From Rebecca billardiae RCC1528 (taxonomy: Eukaryota; Protista; Haptophyta), in contig OZ251255.1 of the NCBI GenBank assembly GCA_965240325.2, positions 1 through 64,000 of the forward strand: a stretch of DNA of 64,000 nt, read 5' to 3'. The notes beneath the pieces were generated by a model. That model was not told the DNA's origin. It did not search any database and saw nothing but the letters and a program-made list of their open reading frames with translations. A program made the translations under genes and the position numbers. Below are positions 40,364 through 47,566 of the stretch, in pieces (positions within the stretch are counted from its first letter, which is position 1; every line of letters begins with the position of its first letter).

Positions 40364-43300
40364 TCACACCACGCCCGTCGATGGCCGCCGGCTGCTCGGC
40401 AGCGACGACGACGCCGGGCCGCTGCCGTCTGCGCGCGGCTCGGCGGCGGCGCCCGGCGCGCGCGGCGCGCCGAGCCCGAGCGAGCGCCGCCGCCCCGCGC
40501 CGGGCGTGCCCCACGAGCCGAGGCCGAGCCCGCCGCCGAGCCCGCCGCCGTCGTCTGCGCTGCGCCCGCGCACGCGCGGGTGCGGGTGCGGCGAGCCGCG
40601 CTCGAGCTCGTCGAGGTCGACGCGCAGCCGCTCGCACGTGCCGCGCCGGCGCTGCGGCGTGCCGCCGCCGAGGCCGACGCCGGCCGGCCGCGCCTGCGCC
40701 GGGCTGCCCCCCTCCAGCTGCTGCGCGGGCGCGGGGCCCAGCCGCGCGATCGGCGGGGGCCCCTCCCACTCGAGAGTGAACGCGCGCCGCCGACGCCACC
40801 GGCCGGGCGTGCCGCCGCCCGTCGGCGTGCGGCTGCCGCCCGGGCCGCCGCCGGGCTCGGAGCGCGGCGCGGCCGCGTCCGGGTGGCGCCGGCCGATCGG
40901 CGCGGTGCGCACGCCGTGGCTCGGCGTCGGCGGCAGCAGCTCGGGCGGCGTGGTCGGCACGGCGGCGCGCAGCGTCTCCGCCGCCTCGGCCGCGGCGAGG
41001 CTCGGCCGCAGCTGCGGCAGCTCGCTGAAGTCCGGGAGGTCCGGCCGGTCGGCGTCCGCCCCGCCCACCGCCCCGCCCAGCAGCGAGAGGGCCAAGCCTG
41101 CGGGGCGGGGGGGCGAGGCGGAGGGCGGGGCAGAGGGCGGGGGCGGGGCGGCGGGCGCCGCGCTCGCCCACTCGATCAGCTCTCGGCGCCGCGCACGGCA
41201 CGGCGCGCACACGGGCGCGCGCGCGGCGCGCGCGCGCGCACCGGCGGTGGCGCCAAGCGCGTTGGGCGCAGCGGCAGCCGAAGACGAGTCGCCGCCCGCG
41301 CCCGAGCCGCCGCCGCCGCTTGGCGCTGGGGCCGCGTGCGGCTCCGAGACGGTGGCGACGCTGGTGCGCGCGGACGGGGTGGCCGCTGCGGCGAGCGCGC
41401 GCCGCGCCTCGCGCAGCCCGGGCAGCAGCTGCGGCAGCGCCAGCCCGCGCCCGTCCCGCCAGCGGTGCGGGCCCTCGCCCGCGCGGTGCGCCTGCGCCCC
41501 CAGCACGGCCGCTGCCTCCGCCTTGGCGCCGCCGGCGCGCGCGCTGCCGCCGCCGCCCGCGCCCAGCGCCGCGCTCTCCAGCGCGGCGCCCTCGAGCAGC
41601 AGCGCGCGCAGCGCCGCGCCCTCGGGCAGCTCGAGCGCCAGCCTGGCCGCCTGCCGCTCCTCCATGCGCTGCGGCAGGTTGCCGAACAGCTCGACCAGCT
41701 GCTCGCCCTCGGGCGTGCGGAAGCGAATCTCCGGCAGCAGCGCCGCGCGCACAATGGCCGCCGAGAAGCGCGCCTCCGCCAGCTCAGAGGCCGCCGCGTG
41801 CGGGGGCGGCGCGGCGGCGGAGGCGGAGCACGCGTCCGCGTCCGCGCCGCGCCCGCCGCGGCCGGAGTGCTGCTCGGCCGCGCCGCCGCCCGCCGACGCG
41901 GCGGCGAAGAGCGGCGGCGGCCGGCCCGCCGCCGGGTGCACCGGCGCCGAGCGCAGCCGCGCGCGCGCGAGCCGCGCGGCCACGGTCGCGCCGCCGCTCG
42001 ACGGCCGCGGCGCCGCGCGCGCGAAGCGCGAGCGCAGCGAGCCCGTGCCCGAGCCGCGCCGCCCGCGCGCGGCGGCGCCCGCGGCGGCGCTCGCGCCGCC
42101 GCCCTCCGCCACGTCGCTCAGCTCAGCGGCGCCGCCGCCCCGGCGCGCGCCGCCGCCGCCGCCGCCGGCGGCGGCGGCGGGCTGTTGTCGCCTGAACGAG
42201 GGGCTGCCCGCGCCGCACCCGCCGCCGCCCGCGCCGCCGCCGGCTGCGGCGGCGCAGCCCTTGGCGAACGCGTCGCCGCCGTGCGTGGCGGCGCAAAAGT
42301 CGAGCGCGTCCAGCCGGCCGTACGCGCGCGGCGGCGCGGCGGCCGCGGCGGCGCACGCACCGCCGCCGCCCGGCTCGGCCGCCGCCGCGCCGCGCGCCGC
42401 GGCGGCGGCGCGCCAGGAGGAGGTGAGCGAGCTCACGCCCGACGAGCCGCCCGCCGGGTCGGCGGCGCGGCTCGAGCGGCGCGAGCGCGGCGCGGACGGC
42501 GGCCCGTCCGCCACCTCGGCCGCGGGGCCGATGGCCGAGCCGGCGGCGGGCGCGGCGCGCGCGCGCGGCTGCGCGCCGCGCGGGTGGTGGTGTCCGCTGC
42601 GGCTGCGGCTGCCGCTCCGCTCGGCGCCGCGCGACGACGCGTCCGAGCCGAAGGAGGGCTGGCGCTGCGCGCCCAGCCGCGCGCCGAGCGACGCGCTCAG
42701 CTCGGTGAGCAGCGCGCACCCGCTCGGCGGCCGGCTGCCGGCGCCCAGCCGGCGCGCCGGCCCCGCCGCCCGCTGCTCGGCGAGTGCGCCGCCCTGGCCG
42801 CCCTGGCCGCCGCCCGGCTCCGACTCGGCGTGCGACCGAGATTGCATCTCGCTCTGCAGCTGCCGAGATTGCATCTCGCGCAGCAGCTGCTCGCGGTACA
42901 GCTCGCCGTACAGGCCGAGGATGGGGCGCACGAGCTTGTGCCGGTCGCAGTCTGCGCAGCGGGCGCGCGCGCGCGCGGCCGGGGCGCAGCCGAGGGGCGC
43001 GCGCGCGTGCGTGCGCGTGAGAGCGCGCGCGTGCGCGTGTGCGCGTGCGCGCGCGTGCGCGTGTGCACGTGTGCGCGTGTGCGCGTGCGCGCGCGTGCGC
43101 GTGTGCACGTGTGCGCGTGTGCGCGTGCGCGCGTGTGCGCGTGTGCGCGCACAGTTCCGCTGGCAGCCGTCAAACACGTGGCACAGCGAGCAGCACGTCG
43201 CCTCGCCCTCGAAGACGCGCACGGAGACGAGCAGCCACTCCGCGCCCACCGGCTCGGGCGGCTCCACCTCCGACGTCGCGATCCACATGTTCGTGTGCCC

Positions 43301-46036
43301 GTTGCGCATCGCGTAGCAGAGTTGCTCCGCGCGGCACCACATGCGCCGGTGGAAGGAGGCCGCGCCGCACGGCGCGCCCGTCGTGGCGTGCGTCGCGTCG
43401 GGGGCGACGATGAGGAAGGCGGAGGCCATCGAAGCGTACAGCGCGAGGTTGTCGATCGCGAGGCCCATCTGCGTCGGGTTGAGCTGCGGCACCTGCGCAC
43501 CGCCCCGCGCCGGTCCGGCCGAGTCCGGGGGGGGCGCCGCCGGCGCCGACGCGCGCGCTTGGCTGTGAGCGCGCGCTGTCGCGGGCGCGCGCTGCGCCCT
43601 GCGCGCTGCGCCCCGCGCCCTGCGCCCCGCGCCCTGCCTGCGCGGCGCGCGGGCGGCGCGCACCGAGCAGTAGTCGACCCAGACGTGCACGTCCTCGAGG
43701 GGCCAGCCGTTGTGCCGCCCGATCGCGCGGACGGCGTGCATCATCGCCCGGTACTGCACGGCCGTCGGGTCCGGGTGGTCCTGGGCCAGCCACTGCAAGC
43801 AAGCAGCGGCGCACGCGCAAGCACGCACGCGCACACATGCACGCACACGCACGCACGCACACATGCGCACGCAGGGAGCGAGCCGCGGGGCGGCGGGCAG
43901 CGGGCGGAGGGCGTGAGCGCGCGCCCACGCGGCAGCGACGCCCCCTCGCCGCCCGCCCCGCGCGCCGCGCACGCCCCCGCCGCCGCCGCCGCGCCCCACC
44001 TGGTGCGAGACGAACACAAAATGCTTCGACGCGAGGAAGGACGCACACGCCTCGATCGTGTCGAGGGTCGTGTGCGCGCCCTCCGCGCGCAGCGCCTCGT
44101 ACGGGCGGAGGCCGTCGTGCGCGCGGAGCTGCGCGTACGAGGAGAGCGTGAGCCAGAACTGCAGCCGCTGGTTGCACTCCGTCGCCGCGTCCAGCTCGCG
44201 CGCCTCGTACTTGCGCCGCGACGCCTCGAGCGCAGCCCACCGCCTGCGCGAGCGCACCGTGGCGCCCGCGCACAGCGTTGCGCACAGCAGCGCGGCCACG
44301 GAGGCGGCGGCGAAGAGCAGCGCCTGGTACAGCGCGAGCTCGGAGGAGGGCGGGCCGCCCGCCGCGTCGGGGCCGTGGCTGTGCTCGCCCTCGCCGCCGC
44401 CGCCGCCCTCCTCCGCCTCCGCCTCGCCAGCGCGCGCGCCCGCAGGCGGTGGCGCGGCAGCAGGGACTCCGTCCGCAGGCGCGTGCGCGCCGCCCCCGAA
44501 CCAAGCGTAGGCGGAGGGGAGCGCCCACGTGCCGACGCCGCCCGCGTCGTCGTCGAGCGGCGTGGCGTCGAGCGCGCGCTGCGTGAGCGAGCGCTCCGCC
44601 GCGTCGTACGTCAGCCGCTGCAGCACCAGCAGCCGCTCGGCGCCGCCGCCCTCGGCGCCGCCCTCGCCCTCCGCGCCGCCGCCCAGCCGCTCGCCGGCGT
44701 GCGTGAAGGCGACGTGGCCCGAGGCGCCGGCGAAGGCGAGCGCGCCGAGCGCGGCGTGCAGCGCCGCCGCGTACCCCGCCTCACCCGGCGCCGCGCCGCC
44801 CGCCGCCTCCACCGCGCACGCGCCCAGCGCCAGCGCCGCCACCGCGTCGTACGCGAGCGCGCCGCCCGGCGGCGCTGTGGCCGCGCGTGCCGCGGCTGCC
44901 GCCGTCCACGGCAGCTCGCCGCGCGCGGCGGCGGCGGCGAGGTCGGCGTCGTCGGGGTACGCGCGCAGCGCGTCGAGCTCGCCCGCGTACGCGCCGTGCG
45001 CGCCGTTCCCGCCCGCCAGCGCCGCGCGCACGCCGCCCCATGTCAGCTCCGACGCGAGCGCGGCGCGCGCCGCGCGCCAGCGCGCGCCGCCCGGCCGCGC
45101 GCCGGCTCCGATCACGACCGAACCGTCGAGGTGGCGGCGCCAGTCGTCGGGCGCGGCGTCGTCGGCGGCGGGCGGCGGCACGTGCTGCTCCGCGCCCGCG
45201 CTCGACGCGTCGACGAACACCCAGTGCCGCGACGCCTCGCCGATCAGCCCGCGCGCCGCCGCCGCGGCCACGAGGTTTGGCAGCGCGCCGTCGGACGGCA
45301 GCGGCGCGCACAGCACGCGCGCGGGCGCGCCCGACGCGAGGAGGGCGTCGAGCGCGGCGCCGATGGTGGCGTTGTCCGCCGGGTCGTACGAGGCGACGGC
45401 AACGTCCACCCCGCGCGGCGCGAGCAGCGCGGACAGCGCCAGCCCCACCTCCGCGCCGAGGCCGTGCTGCGCGGGCAGCAGCAGCGCCAGCGCGCGCCAG
45501 CCGTGCGTCGCCACCCACCGGCCCACGCCCGCGGCGAGCGTGGCGGCGGAGGGGTGCAGCCGCGCGACGAGCGGGAAGAGGCGGGCGTCGGCGAGCGCGT
45601 CGGGGCTCGCGGCGTACGCCACGAGCGGCACCCCGAGCGCCGCGCTCGCGCTCGCGAGCGGCAGCGCGCACGCGGCGACGCCAGGCCCGAGCAGCGCGTC
45701 CCACCGCCGCGCGCGCGGCGCGGAGGGGCCGAGGGCGGCGTCGAGGGCGGCGGCGCAGTCGCCGCCCGTGTCGACGAGCGTCACGTTGAGCACCGTCGAG
45801 CAGTTGCCCAGCGCGCCGAGCGCCGCCACCACCGAGCCGTTGCGCGCGTTGGCGTGCGCGCCGCCCAGCAGCGCGTACCCCAGCAGGGGGCCGCGCCCGG
45901 CGGAGCCGAGCGGGCCGAGGACGCCGAGCTCGAGCGCGCGCGCGGGGGCGCGCGCGAGCGGGCTGTGCGCGAGGAGGAGGAGCAGCGGCGCCGCCGCGTG
46001 CGCCGCGCGCCGCCGCCGGCGCGCGCGTGCGGTCAT
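40364..46036 (-). CDS. Single-pass receptor: signal peptide, Venus-flytrap (ANF-receptor/PBP type 1) ectodomain, TM helix, HET/TIR-like domain, long disordered tail; introns 43793-43999, 43493-43663, 42952-43152, possibly 41182-41241
   Basis: ALLGPG..., VPLVAYAASPDALADARLFPLVARLHPS, HGWRALALL, LAYDAVAALA, FAGASGHVAF; TM ALLFAAASVAALLCATLCAGA; FVSHQW..DHPDP, WVDYCSVPQ, IDNLALYA, RRMWCRAE. Confidence 0.8.
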   Translation of the reverse strand: MTARARRRRRAAHAAAPLLLLLAHSPLARAPARALELGVLGPLGSAGRGPLLGYALLGGAHANARNGSVVAALGALGNCSTVLNVTLVDTGGDCAAALDAALGPSAPRARRWDALLGPGVAACALPLASASAALGVPLVAYAASPDALADARLFPLVARLHPSAATLAAGVGRWVATHGWRALALLLPAQHGLGAEVGLALSALLAPRGVDVAVASYDPADNATIGAALDALLASGAPARVLCAPLPSDGALPNLVAAAAARGLIGEASRHWVFVDASSAGAEQHVPPPAADDAAPDDWRRHLDGSVVIGAGARPGGARWRAARAALASELTWGGVRAALAGGNGAHGAYAGELDALRAYPDDADLAAAAARGELPWTAAAAARAATAPPGGALAYDAVAALALGACAVEAAGGAAPGEAGYAAALHAALGALAFAGASGHVAFTHAGERLGGGAEGEGGAEGGGAERLLVLQRLTYDAAERSLTQRALDATPLDDDAGGVGTWALPSAYAWFGGGAHAPADGVPAAAPPPAGARAGEAEAEEGGGGGEGEHSHGPDAAGGPPSSELALYQALLFAAASVAALLCATLCAGATVRSRRRWAALEASRRKYEARELDAATECNQRLQFWLTLSSYAQLRAHDGLRPYEALRAEGAHTTLDTIEACASFLASKHFVFVSHQVGRGGGGGGVRGARGGRRGGVAAAWARAHALRPLPAAPRLAPCVRMCACVRVRACVRVRACACAAACLQWLAQDHPDPTAVQYRAMMHAVRAIGRHNGWPLEDVHVWVDYCSVRAARAPRRQGAGRRARGAARRAQRAPATARAHSQARASAPAAPPPDSAGPARGGAQVPQLNPTQMGLAIDNLALYASMASAFLIVAPDATHATTGAPCGAASFHRRMWCRAEQLCYAMRNGHTNMWIATSEVEPPEPVGAEWLLVSVRVFEGEATCCSLCHVFDGCQRNCARTRAHARTRTRAHVHTRTRAHAHTRTRAHAHARARAHAHARALTRTHARAPLGCAPAARARARCADCDRHKLVRPILGLYGELYREQLLREMQSRQLQSEMQSRSHAESEPGGGQGGQGGALAEQRAAGPARRLGAGSRPPSGCALLTELSASLGARLGAQRQPSFGSDASSRGAERSGSRSRSGHHHPRGAQPRARAAPAAGSAIGPAAEVADGPPSAPRSRRSSRAADPAGGSSGVSSLTSSWRAAAAARGAAAAEPGGGGACAAAAAAPPRAYGRLDALDFCAATHGGDAFAKGCAAAAGGGAGGGGCGAGSPSFRRQQPAAAAGGGGGGARRGGGAAELSDVAEGGGASAAAGAAARGRRGSGTGSLRSRFARAAPRPSSGGATVAARLARARLRSAPVHPAAGRPPPLFAAASAGGGAAEQHSGRGGRGADADACSASAAAPPPHAAASELAEARFSAAIVRAALLPEIRFRTPEGEQLVELFGNLPQRMEERQAARLALELPEGAALRALLLEGAALESAALGAGGGGSARAGGAKAEAAAVLGAQAHRAGEGPHRWRDGRGLALPQLLPGLREARRALAAAATPSARTSVATVSEPHAAPAPSGGGGSGAGGDSSSAAAAPNALGATAGARARAARAPVCAPCRARRRELIEWASAAPAAPPPPSAPPSASPPRPAGLALSLLGGAVGGADADRPDLPDFSELPQLRPSLAAAEAAETLRAAVPTTPPELLPPTPSHGVRTAPIGRRHPDAAAPRSEPGGGPGGSRTPTGGGTPGRWRRRRAFTLEWEGPPPIARLGPAPAQQLEGGSPAQARPAGVGLGGGTPQRRRGTCERLRVDLDELERGSPHPHPRVRGRSADDGGGLGGGLGLGSWGTPGAGRRRSLGLGAPRAPGAAAEPRADGSGPASSSLPSSRRPSTGVV

Positions 46037-46436
46037 CGTCAGCCGGGCAGGCGGGGACGCCTGGGCCGGCAGGGAACGCATGAAGTGACGCCGTCGCCCT
46101 GCTGTAATCATAACGTTTGACGACGCAGAGCGGGGACTACAATCTATGGCGAAGCGTATTGCCGAAAGGTGCCGAAACTTCCGCCACCCGCACGTTTCTA
46201 CAGTTTCATATGATCATATCTGAGGGTATATCCATGCTTAGCAGCCAAAGTTCATAATGGAGGTCGTGCTCGAAACCTCTTTGAGAGAATTCGACGGTTC
46301 GAAATCGATGTAGCAAGACGGCCGTGCGGGTTGACGAAACGCCGGCGCGGTGAAGTACATGTTTCAACGTTACGTCGGCTGCTTACTCGGCGCTCAGCCT
46401 GGCCTCCGCCGCCGGACGGCAGCGCGTGGTGCAGCC

Positions 46437-47304
46437 TCAGCGCAGGGGCCGCAGTCGCCCCACGCGCTCCGGCTCAAGCGTCGGCTGCACTCCGGCTCCG
46501 CCATCTTCGCCCACGCCCAGGCCGAGCGCATCGCCGCGGCGGCCGCACGCGTGCACGCTGCCGTCCGCGCTGTAACGTAGAGGGCATGGTGCTCGCCGAG
46601 TGAGCTGTCGAGCACGCGCGCATGCGCGAGGCCCTCTACCCACTCGGGCAGCGTGTAAATCATTCGGTGCCCCAGCCCCAGAAGGCCGTAGTAGTTGTTC
46701 CCAAACGCGTGCGCGCTGCCGTCCGCGCACACCACCGCGCTGGTGTGAAAGCCTGCGCTGGCGCGCACGGCACGCACGCCCATCAGTGCGTCGATGCGCG
46801 TGGGCACACGGCGATCCGCCGTTTCGCCGTGGCCGAGCACGCCACAACAACCGTCTCCAAAGGAGTGCGCGCCGCCCGCTGCGTCCACCACCAGGCTGTG
46901 CGACCAGCCCGCGCTCACGTGCACGGCGCGCACGCCCGCGAGCGCCTCGATGAGCCGCGGCGTGCGGTGCCGCTCCCGTCGCCGTGGCCAAGGCGACCCA
47001 TGCCGCCATGCCCGCACGAGTACACGGCACCACATGCCGATAGCAGCAGTTGTGCCTCCGACCAGCGGCCACGCCGCTCACGCGCACGCCGTCCAGCGCC
47101 TCGATGCGCGTCGGCTCCAGCCGCTTCTTCGTGTCGCCGTGGCCGAGCTGGCCATCGTAGTTGAAGCCCCAGCTGCACGCACCCCCGGCTGCTGTGAGCG
47201 CAAGGCCGTAATCGCAGCCAGCGCTAATGCCGACCACGAGCTCCGCGCCCAGCGCCGCCACCTGCACGAACGCCCTCGGGGGGCGCGCGCGTCGTCGGTG
47301 CCAT
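46437..47304 (-). pseudogene. F-box-RCC1 paralogue A, internally deleted and frameshifted
   Basis: MAPTTRAPPE start is fused out of frame to RAFVQVAALGAEL (F-box and first repeats missing); RCC1 homology continues in different frames. Confidence 0.85.
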
Positions 47305-47566
47305 CGAGGGTGGTCGCGCCAGCGCTGTCCGCGGACGGCGGTTGGCCAAAGGCGCGGGTTTTTTGGTGCACGCACTTATTCAGATTTTCGCACTCAATCA
47401 TATTCTTCAAATCCACTGATTGATGTCTGACTCTGATCGACAGCCGACTCCGCGTCGACGTCGTGTTGTGTGTGCTTGCGCAACGCTGGCACGAGCCGAC
47501 AGCGGTGTGCGGAGCCCACGCGCGCAGCTCACGAGGCGCAACGCCCCCGATCTGCCCGAACGATGC

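Follow-up and report, generated by a model that had tools for sequence, protein, structure and literature searches.

The window analysed here (64,000 nucleotides of the haptophyte Rebecca billardiae RCC1528, contig OZ251255.1) encodes on its minus strand a putative receptor, in which a Venus-flytrap ectodomain of the ANF_receptor family is joined via a single transmembrane (TM) helix to a HET-like cytoplasmic domain. Judged from the sequence, this is one intact and genuine gene for ectodomain, TM helix and cytoplasmic domain, with a predicted type I single-pass product of approximately 1,700 residues. Its open reading frame (ORF; 46111..40364) comprises 1915 codons without an internal stop and lies in a region with a G+C content of 0.73-0.87 (40500-46000), compared to 0.63-0.72 in the flanks. 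The limits of this high-G+C block are those of the ORF, and the G+C content drops from 0.85 to 0.69 where the ORF ends.

The ectodomain matches PF01094 at ORF residues 107-476 (E 7.3e-17, 61.9 bits versus a cut-off of 25.4), with positions 24-341 of the 353 in the ANF_receptor profile covered in one stretch and the gathering cut-off passed. The flytrap segment (44684..45793) has a G+C content of 0.97 at third (GC3) versus 0.65 at second codon positions (GC2), and its nearest solved chains in the PDB, as found with phmmer, are the ectodomains of GABA-B R1 (the best match, E 3e-5), mGluR5 and T1R3. The highest 19-residue Kyte-Doolittle window in the entire ORF (2.31) is located at residues 592-619. 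By this crude hydropathy measure the protein has the features of a type I single-pass protein, namely a Leu-rich N-terminal h-region and one dominant TM segment, which is followed by RSRRRW. The original prediction had placed a signal peptide, an ANF-receptor domain, one TM helix and a cytoplasmic domain in a single gene, which is borne out by the ORF, Pfam, hydropathy and the family profile described below.

A profile built from 56 relatives of the cytoplasmic domain (alignment A1) matches the ORF in four pieces, which are collinear and abut one another (Table 1; E 6.4e-78 in total). The three segments left unmatched are bounded by GT...AG and represent insertions missing from all 56 relatives, and the gaps in the profile match coincide exactly with the proposed introns 1-3. 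Because the lengths of all three introns are multiples of three and none contains an in-frame stop, the gene reads as a single ORF, and its spliced structure is hidden from a plain ORF scan. Codon-position composition differs between the two types of segment: exons show GC3 values of 0.95-1.00 versus GC2 values of 0.44-0.65, and introns lack codon periodicity with approximately 0.8-0.9 G+C at every codon position (0.81/0.86/0.78 in intron 1 and 0.90/0.88/0.88 in intron 2). Intron 3 consists almost entirely of a tandem array detected by Tandem Repeats Finder (43003-43146, period 40, 3.7 copies, 91% matches) with the 8-nt unit GCGCGTGT, and intron 2 (repeats at 43569-43637) and intron 1 (43810-43873) are likewise made up largely of short tandem repeats. 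Without intron 3, the Cys-rich segment is as long as that of the closest relative, P0001. When the window domain was folded through its introns, exon-coded parts reached predicted local distance difference test (pLDDT) values of 89-98, compared to 29-50 for intron-coded parts (29-40 in intron 1). After intron removal, the Ser-to-Trp and Trp-to-Arg spacings amount to 40 and 55 residues, respectively, which equal the family values. The introns were judged by homology and composition, with the exons kept separate throughout. The four motifs that had been reported for the cytoplasmic domain, SHQW..HPDP (interrupted by intron 1 after SHQ), WVDYCSVPQ (interrupted by intron 2 after WVDYCS), IDNLALYA and RMWCRAE, were all recovered, and with their family-type spacings they represent more than a chance assembly.

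The cytoplasmic domain had been placed at approximately 42900-44180. This location is confirmed with a slightly shifted lower bound, as conservation extends to approximately 42842 and a C-terminal family motif (..PEIRF..ELFGNLPQRME) is located further downstream at approximately 41642-41764, with its LFGxL core near 41689. In the long C-terminal tail (40367..42841), GC3 (0.96-0.98) exceeds GC2 (0.75-0.82), so coding periodicity is maintained. The LFGxL motif follows PxLGLY after 412 residues in the window gene, compared to 49-218 residues in 82 relatives. The Ala/Gly/Arg/Pro-rich spacer between these two motifs (41765-42841, minus strand) is approximately twice as long as the longest spacer among these relatives, and represents either a lineage-specific disordered expansion or a segment containing unrecognised in-frame introns. 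Furthermore, exon 4 contains a perfect-frame 27-nt duplication (42836-42890, minus strand, 92% matches), which repeats a nine-residue unit (..EMQSRQLQS / EMQSRSHAE..) directly after the conserved domain.

Table 1. Features of the putative receptor gene, with matches to the profile of 56 relatives (alignment A1). Positions refer to the 64,000-nt window.
Feature	Position	Strand	Profile positions	ORF residues	Bits	Basis or remarks
5' coding end	45944..46111	-				Candidate starts 46111, 46081, 46036
Candidate signal peptide after Met26 (46036)		-				Arg-rich n-region, Leu-rich core, SPLARA; by eye, without a predictor
ANF_receptor Venus-flytrap ectodomain, uninterrupted	44684..45793	-				Pfam PF01094
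Single TM helix and basic RSRRRW (inside-positive)	44255..44338	-				Kyte-Doolittle hydropathy
First piece of the HET-like domain (exon 1 end): N-terminal subdomain, strand A, up to FVFVSHQ	44000..44227	-	6-81	629-704	40.2	Family profile
Intron 1, 207 nt, GTGGGG...TTGCAG	43793..43999	-				In frame, stop-free, mostly short tandem repeats
Exon 2: W..HPDP, helix A, strand B (VWVDYCS)	43664..43792	-	81-126	773-818	52.3	GC3 1.00 versus GC2 0.44
Intron 2, 171 nt, GTGCGC...GCGCAG	43493..43663	-				In frame, stop-free; insertion boundaries exactly 43663-43493
Exon 3: VPQ, IDNLALYA, strand C, RMWCRAE, strand D, Cys-rich TCC..CH segment	43153..43492	-	125-230	874-982	141.3	Family profile
Intron 3, 201 nt, phase 1, GTGCGC...GCGCAG	42952..43152	-				Nearly all a 40-nt (8-nt) tandem array
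Exon 4 start: CDRHKLVRPILGLYGELY, last strongly conserved block of the cytoplasmic domain	42842..42951	-	227-269	1048-1090	22.2	Family profile
Long Ala/Gly/Arg/Pro-rich C-terminal tail, same frame	40367..42841	-				Further in-frame introns may occur
Stop codon of the open frame	40364..40366	-				ORF translation

The window gene is one member of a large, essentially uncharacterised receptor family of microalgae, in which the flytrap form is one variant among many. Queried with no more than exon 3, an exhaustive phmmer search retrieved 713 cluster representatives at E<=1e-3, 300 of them at E<=1e-10. Named members, all labelled hypothetical, belong to the haptophytes Chrysotila/Pleurochrysis and Prymnesium polylepis and to the diatom Thalassiosira sp. 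(KAL7541035.1), and the remaining sequences derive mostly from marine metagenomes and metatranscriptomes. The family contains 14 invariant and approximately 27 nearly invariant positions at 28-44% pairwise identity. In P0001 numbering, the invariant residues are E40, F71, S73, H74, W76, D83, W113, Q121, P149, R168, W170, C171, R172 and E174, of which S73, H74, W76, R168, W170, C171 and E174 were imposed by the motif filter used for row selection and the other seven were not. All 14 are retained in the window gene. A TM-like stretch precedes the domain by 15-37 residues, usually by approximately 24, in 37 of 53 long members, and the TM-to-domain distance in the window gene agrees with this arrangement.

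The ectodomains of the 53 long members are diverse and include Ephrin_rec_like (12), ANF_receptor (4), Peripla_BP_6 (4), SBP_bac_1 (3), SBP_bac_8 (3), dCache_1 (3), TNFR-like (3), Ig-like (3), LRR_8 (2), Phosphonate-bd (2), NCD3G (2) and FG-GAP (1) domains. Flytrap-bearing relatives include P0080, P0036, P0147 and P0109, and the flytrap-TM-tail architecture recurs in other organisms. P0080 is an uninterrupted 3273-nt ORF on a 24.8-kb contig, which carries an ANF_receptor annotation and the same flytrap-TM-domain order as the window gene; the fusion is therefore no artefact of the window gene model. In addition, MMETSP transcripts of the family (P0033) cover ectodomain plus tail. A quick domain tree placed the window gene on a long branch (1.87) without supported neighbours, and flytrap members fell in at least two to three places, by which neither a single origin of the flytrap fusion nor repeated shuffling is established. 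In an ESM Atlas structure search, the domain was also recovered from haptophyte proteins that carry Ank, MORN, HNOB (haem NO-binding) or LRR_6/NLRC3-like repeats, which are probably soluble forms and could be partners of the receptors or sensors acting in parallel to them.

No relatives were found among the viral contigs searched. A bacterial origin was considered and rejected on the evidence of these searches, as the sole prokaryotic match is an apparently chimeric contig (CAJWHT010000148.1) in a metagenome-assembled genome labelled Desulfobacteraceae. At positions 3-1100 of this contig (L001), approximately 150 residues of the eukaryotic tail domain (..IFFSHQW..VWVDYVSIPQ..) are followed in frame by bacterial methionyl-tRNA-formyltransferase-like sequence up to the contig end.

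Several lines of evidence relate the cytoplasmic domain to HET. Among the 56 relatives, 19 match PF06985 (HET) at E<=1 (best E 8.4e-5), compared to at most two for any other Pfam family; the HET gathering cut-off of 22.5 bits is exceeded by just two relatives, P0034 with 23.4 bits and P0028 with 23.0 bits. In the hmmscan alignments, which span HET profile positions 4-105, SHQW is placed on position 4-5 (block 1) and WxDxxxxPQ on positions 60-70 approximately (block 2). RxWCRAE lies outside every alignment and agrees with HET block 3 by motif and position only. Read by motif, three blocks stand in the same order in the microalgal family and in the fungal HET proteins HET-E/D/R, TOL, PIN-C and HET-6, namely (L)S(Y/H)xW, then WxDxxCIxQ (HET) or WxDYxSIPQ (microalgal family), and RxW..E. 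The full HET blocks are (A)LSYxWG, WIDxLCIxQ and W..RxWtlQE. At the structural level, an Ascomycota cluster in the ESM Atlas, 99% of which is HET, matches the P0001 model with a TM-score of 0.53 over 235 residues. The designation of the cytoplasmic domain as HET-like is supported by these data, and we consider it likely to be homologous to HET. Searches of the single exons against Pfam and NCBIfam returned nothing meaningful, a word search with ORF residues 625-960 (introns included) had no match because its candidates were dominated by low-complexity intron words, a word search with alignment A1 recovered 13 family fragments and no HET-annotated protein, and an ESM Atlas feature search among named clusters returned a MORN cluster only (0.76), which is uninformative.

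HET has been described as a cell-death domain of approximately 220-240 residues, which is sufficient for cell death in fungi and is proposed to be a distant relative of TIR; overexpression of the HET domain alone induces fungal cell death (PMC12881547). The NADase or cell-death function that the original prediction suggested for the microalgal tail is an inference. Like the tail of the window family, the fungal HET module is joined to many sensor domains. In contrast, fungal HET proteins are cytosolic, with HET often at the N-terminus of NOD-like receptors, whereas the module of the window family is juxtamembrane and located C-terminally to the ectodomain and TM helix. Furthermore, the microalgal family adds an N-terminal subdomain, a Cys-rich C-terminal extension (TCC..H..CD..P.LGLY) and the LFGxL motif, is hosted by haptophytes and diatoms, and is related to fungal HET only at a borderline level of sequence similarity. 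A literature search found no paper tying HET domains to algae.

The AlphaFold2 model of the closest relative (P0001:393-725; pLDDT 89.8, predicted template modelling score 0.87) contains a parallel-strand alpha/beta core (approximately 66-210) of five strands alternating with helices in the order A-E, flanked by an N-terminal subdomain and C-terminal helices. In VIA-align comparisons, the highest scores were obtained with GT-B fucosyltransferase domains (NodZ, FUT1, FUT8; Z 6.3-6.9 on the P0001 model and 6.0-6.3 on the window model), trehalose-P synthases (Z ~6) and nucleoside deoxyribosyltransferases (NDT; Z 5.5-6.0, with 5.6-6.0 on the P0001 model). Chains of TIR proteins scored Z 4.3-5.9 in all and included SpbK, the TIR domains of SARM1 (5.9 on the P0001 model; 5.2 with 18% identity on the window model) and SPARTA (5.8), TIR-1 (5.5), and MyD88 and IL-1RAcP (5.3). 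The window's own model yields the same match list, with NodZ at Z 6.3. These comparisons are compatible with a nucleotide-binding fold class of the TIR/NDT type, which the models do not discriminate from other Rossmann-like domains. The original prediction of a HET/TIR-like effector domain therefore stands in its HET-like part, and a strict TIR fold is compatible with the models but not singled out by them, with TIR scores tied with those of NDT and below those of GT-B.

The invariant residues, except for E40 in the N-terminal subdomain, are located in or at the ends of strands A-C, in the following loops and where the helix behind strand C begins. The invariant polar residues among them, i.e., Ser and His in SHQW, Asp in WxD, Gln in PQ, and Arg, Cys, Arg and Glu in RxWCRxE, lie at C-terminal strand ends or at this helix start, with the invariant Glu (E174 in the P0001 model, E309 in the window reference) at the N-terminus of the helix. 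Alpha/beta folds of this kind build their nucleotide pocket at the C-terminal ends of the strands, where TIR NADases carry their catalytic Glu, and, to judge from the models, TIR enzymes and receptors share with the window domain a Glu at this helix start. In plant TIRs, the catalytic Glu belongs to a WCxxE motif that is spaced like the WCRAE of the window gene, which we take as a lead only.

Receptors of comparable layout are known from several systems. Class C G-protein-coupled receptors (GPCRs; GABA-B, mGluR, T1R) share the ANF_receptor ectodomain family with the window receptor, and their Cys-rich NCD3G domain is also present in two family relatives. Natriuretic peptide receptor guanylyl cyclases such as NPR-A likewise combine a flytrap domain, one TM helix and an intracellular domain of catalytic type. 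In contrast to these flytrap receptors, the output unit encoded in the window is a HET/TIR-like module instead of a seven-TM bundle, an ion channel or a kinase-homology/guanylyl cyclase unit. Among TIR-domain receptors and enzymes, which also comprise the IL-1R family, SARM1, plant TNLs, and bacterial Thoeris ThsB and SPARTA, Toll-like receptors (TLRs) have the same topology of ectodomain, single TM helix and cytoplasmic alpha/beta signalling domain, but the window domain is approximately twice the size of TIR, and its ectodomain is a flytrap instead of leucine-rich repeats or Ig domains. In Gephyrocapsa (Emiliania) huxleyi, proteins induced early in infection by the virus EhV consist of an extracellular leucine-binding/EGF-like region, one TM helix and, inside the cell, a TIR domain with a conserved Glu (PMC12489294, 2025). 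They were defined by HHsuite matches to TIR Pfam families, without biochemical or ligand data (PMC12489294). By their description, with which the comparison was made, these receptor-like TIR proteins fit the Peripla_BP/ANF and Ephrin_rec_like ectodomains of the window family, and set side by side in this way the two groups very probably overlap. The earlier statement that no receptor with the architecture of the window gene has been characterised remains true; related proteins with a ligand-binding ectodomain, TM helix and TIR domain have been known from a haptophyte since 2025 (PMC12489294).

Based on these observations, we propose that the gene encodes a ligand-gated receptor-enzyme, a reading to which we assign a probability of approximately 0.5. 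The flytrap domain would bind a small molecule outside the cell, and lobe closure or dimer rearrangement would act, via the single TM helix, on the juxtamembrane domain (approximately 270-330 residues). This domain may represent the common output module of the microalgal receptor family, a distant relative of fungal HET with a putative three-layer alpha/beta core of the TIR or nucleoside-deoxyribosyltransferase type. Ligand-driven clustering would then induce the domain to cleave or cyclise NAD+ or a related nucleotide, yielding a second messenger or, when activity is high, NAD+ depletion. The most likely single output is enzymatic, because the invariant polar residues occupy the position of the nucleotide pocket in such folds; we put its chances at slightly below even. 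That NAD+ itself serves as the substrate is a tentative and rather doubtful extension.

A number of results weigh against this proposal. Neither the window ORF nor any of its single exons matches PF06985 in Pfam, and both mechanism and structure are listed as not determined for HET itself (PMC12881547). No TIR Pfam family (PF01582, PF13676 and related) is present among the matches of the 56 members at E<=1, and the A1 profile retrieves no TIR from PDB sequences at E<=10, with a chance PAS match (E 0.25) as the only one. Foldseek comparison with the PDB gave no match below E 0.1, the best TIR reaching E 0.57. All Z scores obtained with VIA-align are below 8, a range rated as a common arrangement, and GT-B fucosyltransferase and trehalose-P synthase domains equal or exceed TIR (Z 6.0-6.9). 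As read from the model, the invariant Glu corresponds to the catalytic Glu of TIR in topology only. Finally, the nutrient-type binding ectodomains of the family suggest a role in chemosensing at least as well as in immunity.

The same observations may be explained in other ways. As the main rival, the cytoplasmic domain could be a non-enzymatic, HET/TIR-like assembly platform, whose ligand-induced clustering would seed homotypic oligomers and thereby recruit soluble proteins with the same domain, as the TIR domains of TLRs recruit MyD88. The apparently soluble Ank, MORN, HNOB and LRR_6 fusions of haptophytes would be possible downstream partners in such a scheme, and filaments of MyD88, MAL and TIRAP are among the structural matches (Z 5.1-5.3). 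However, the conserved polar residues at the strand ends (Ser, His, Asp, Gln, Arg, Cys and Glu) resemble a pocket and not an interface, and the Glu placed like the TIR catalytic residue is invariant, which makes a purely scaffolding role unlikely. We consider it improbable that the domain is a Rossmann-like domain for nucleotide-sugar or nucleoside processing (the C-terminal half of a GT-B enzyme, or NDT-like) with a HET similarity due to convergence of short motifs. Fucosyltransferases followed by trehalose-6-P synthases do lead the structural matches, with NDTs close behind, and the HET matches of the relatives mostly fall under the Pfam cut-off; yet none of the 56 members matches a glycosyltransferase or NDT family in Pfam at E<=1, compared to the 19 that match HET. 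The GT-B matches cover just one half of a two-domain enzyme, Z differences of less than one unit are treated as ties, and the match to the fungal HET cluster, at 235 residues, is longer than any PDB match.

At >80% G+C, long ORFs arise by chance, as illustrated by antisense frames of 1846 (40580-46120, plus strand) and 936 codons (40506-43316, plus strand), and ORF length is therefore no evidence of coding in this region. The frame might accordingly consist of two joined genes, or be a decaying pseudogene kept open by the rarity of stop codons, and the 412-residue low-complexity spacer in its tail, which exceeds that of every relative, would fit such a view. This explanation is nevertheless highly improbable, considering that the four domain pieces are collinear in one frame with GT-AG introns exactly at the profile breaks, that exon GC3 values are 0.95-1.00 with all invariant residues retained, and that the TM-to-domain distance is that of the family. 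Moreover, the same fusion occurs as one ORF elsewhere, transcripts of P0033 span ectodomain and tail, and the high-G+C block matches the limits of the ORF.

Haptophytes and diatoms dominate marine primary production, yet little has been learned about their perception of dissolved molecules, bacteria and viruses. Across the hundreds of clusters of the family, nutrient- and pattern-type ectodomains feed one conserved HET/TIR-like tail, which points to a common and as yet uncharacterised signalling output. Should the tail prove to cleave NAD+ enzymatically, TIR-type signalling would reach as far as the ligand-gated receptors on algal surfaces, and the mechanism missing for fungal HET domains would be supplied. 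A more far-reaching and decidedly speculative possibility, which we regard as unlikely, is that haptophytes and diatoms use the family as their main transmembrane chemosensory system, with bacterial-type binding domains for small molecules (flytrap, SBP, phosphonate-binding, dCache) coupled directly to a HET/TIR-like enzyme that produces an NAD+-derived second messenger, and that the family is not primarily involved in immunity or cell death. If true, this would represent a class of eukaryotic receptor-enzymes on a par in distinctness with the receptor kinases or the receptor guanylyl cyclases, and a biochemical activity would be assigned to the HET lineage for the first time. The flytrap member described here is a good entry point, because ligand-screening methods are well established for its ectodomain class.

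Upstream of the receptor gene and on the same strand, the window encodes an RCC1-repeat protein (46397-47375, minus strand; Pfam RCC1, E 4.5e-23 and 1.6e-15). As its sequence is distributed over two overlapping ORFs that differ in frame, an intron probably interrupts this gene, which ends approximately 290 nt before the first ATG of the receptor gene, within a dip in G+C content (0.63).

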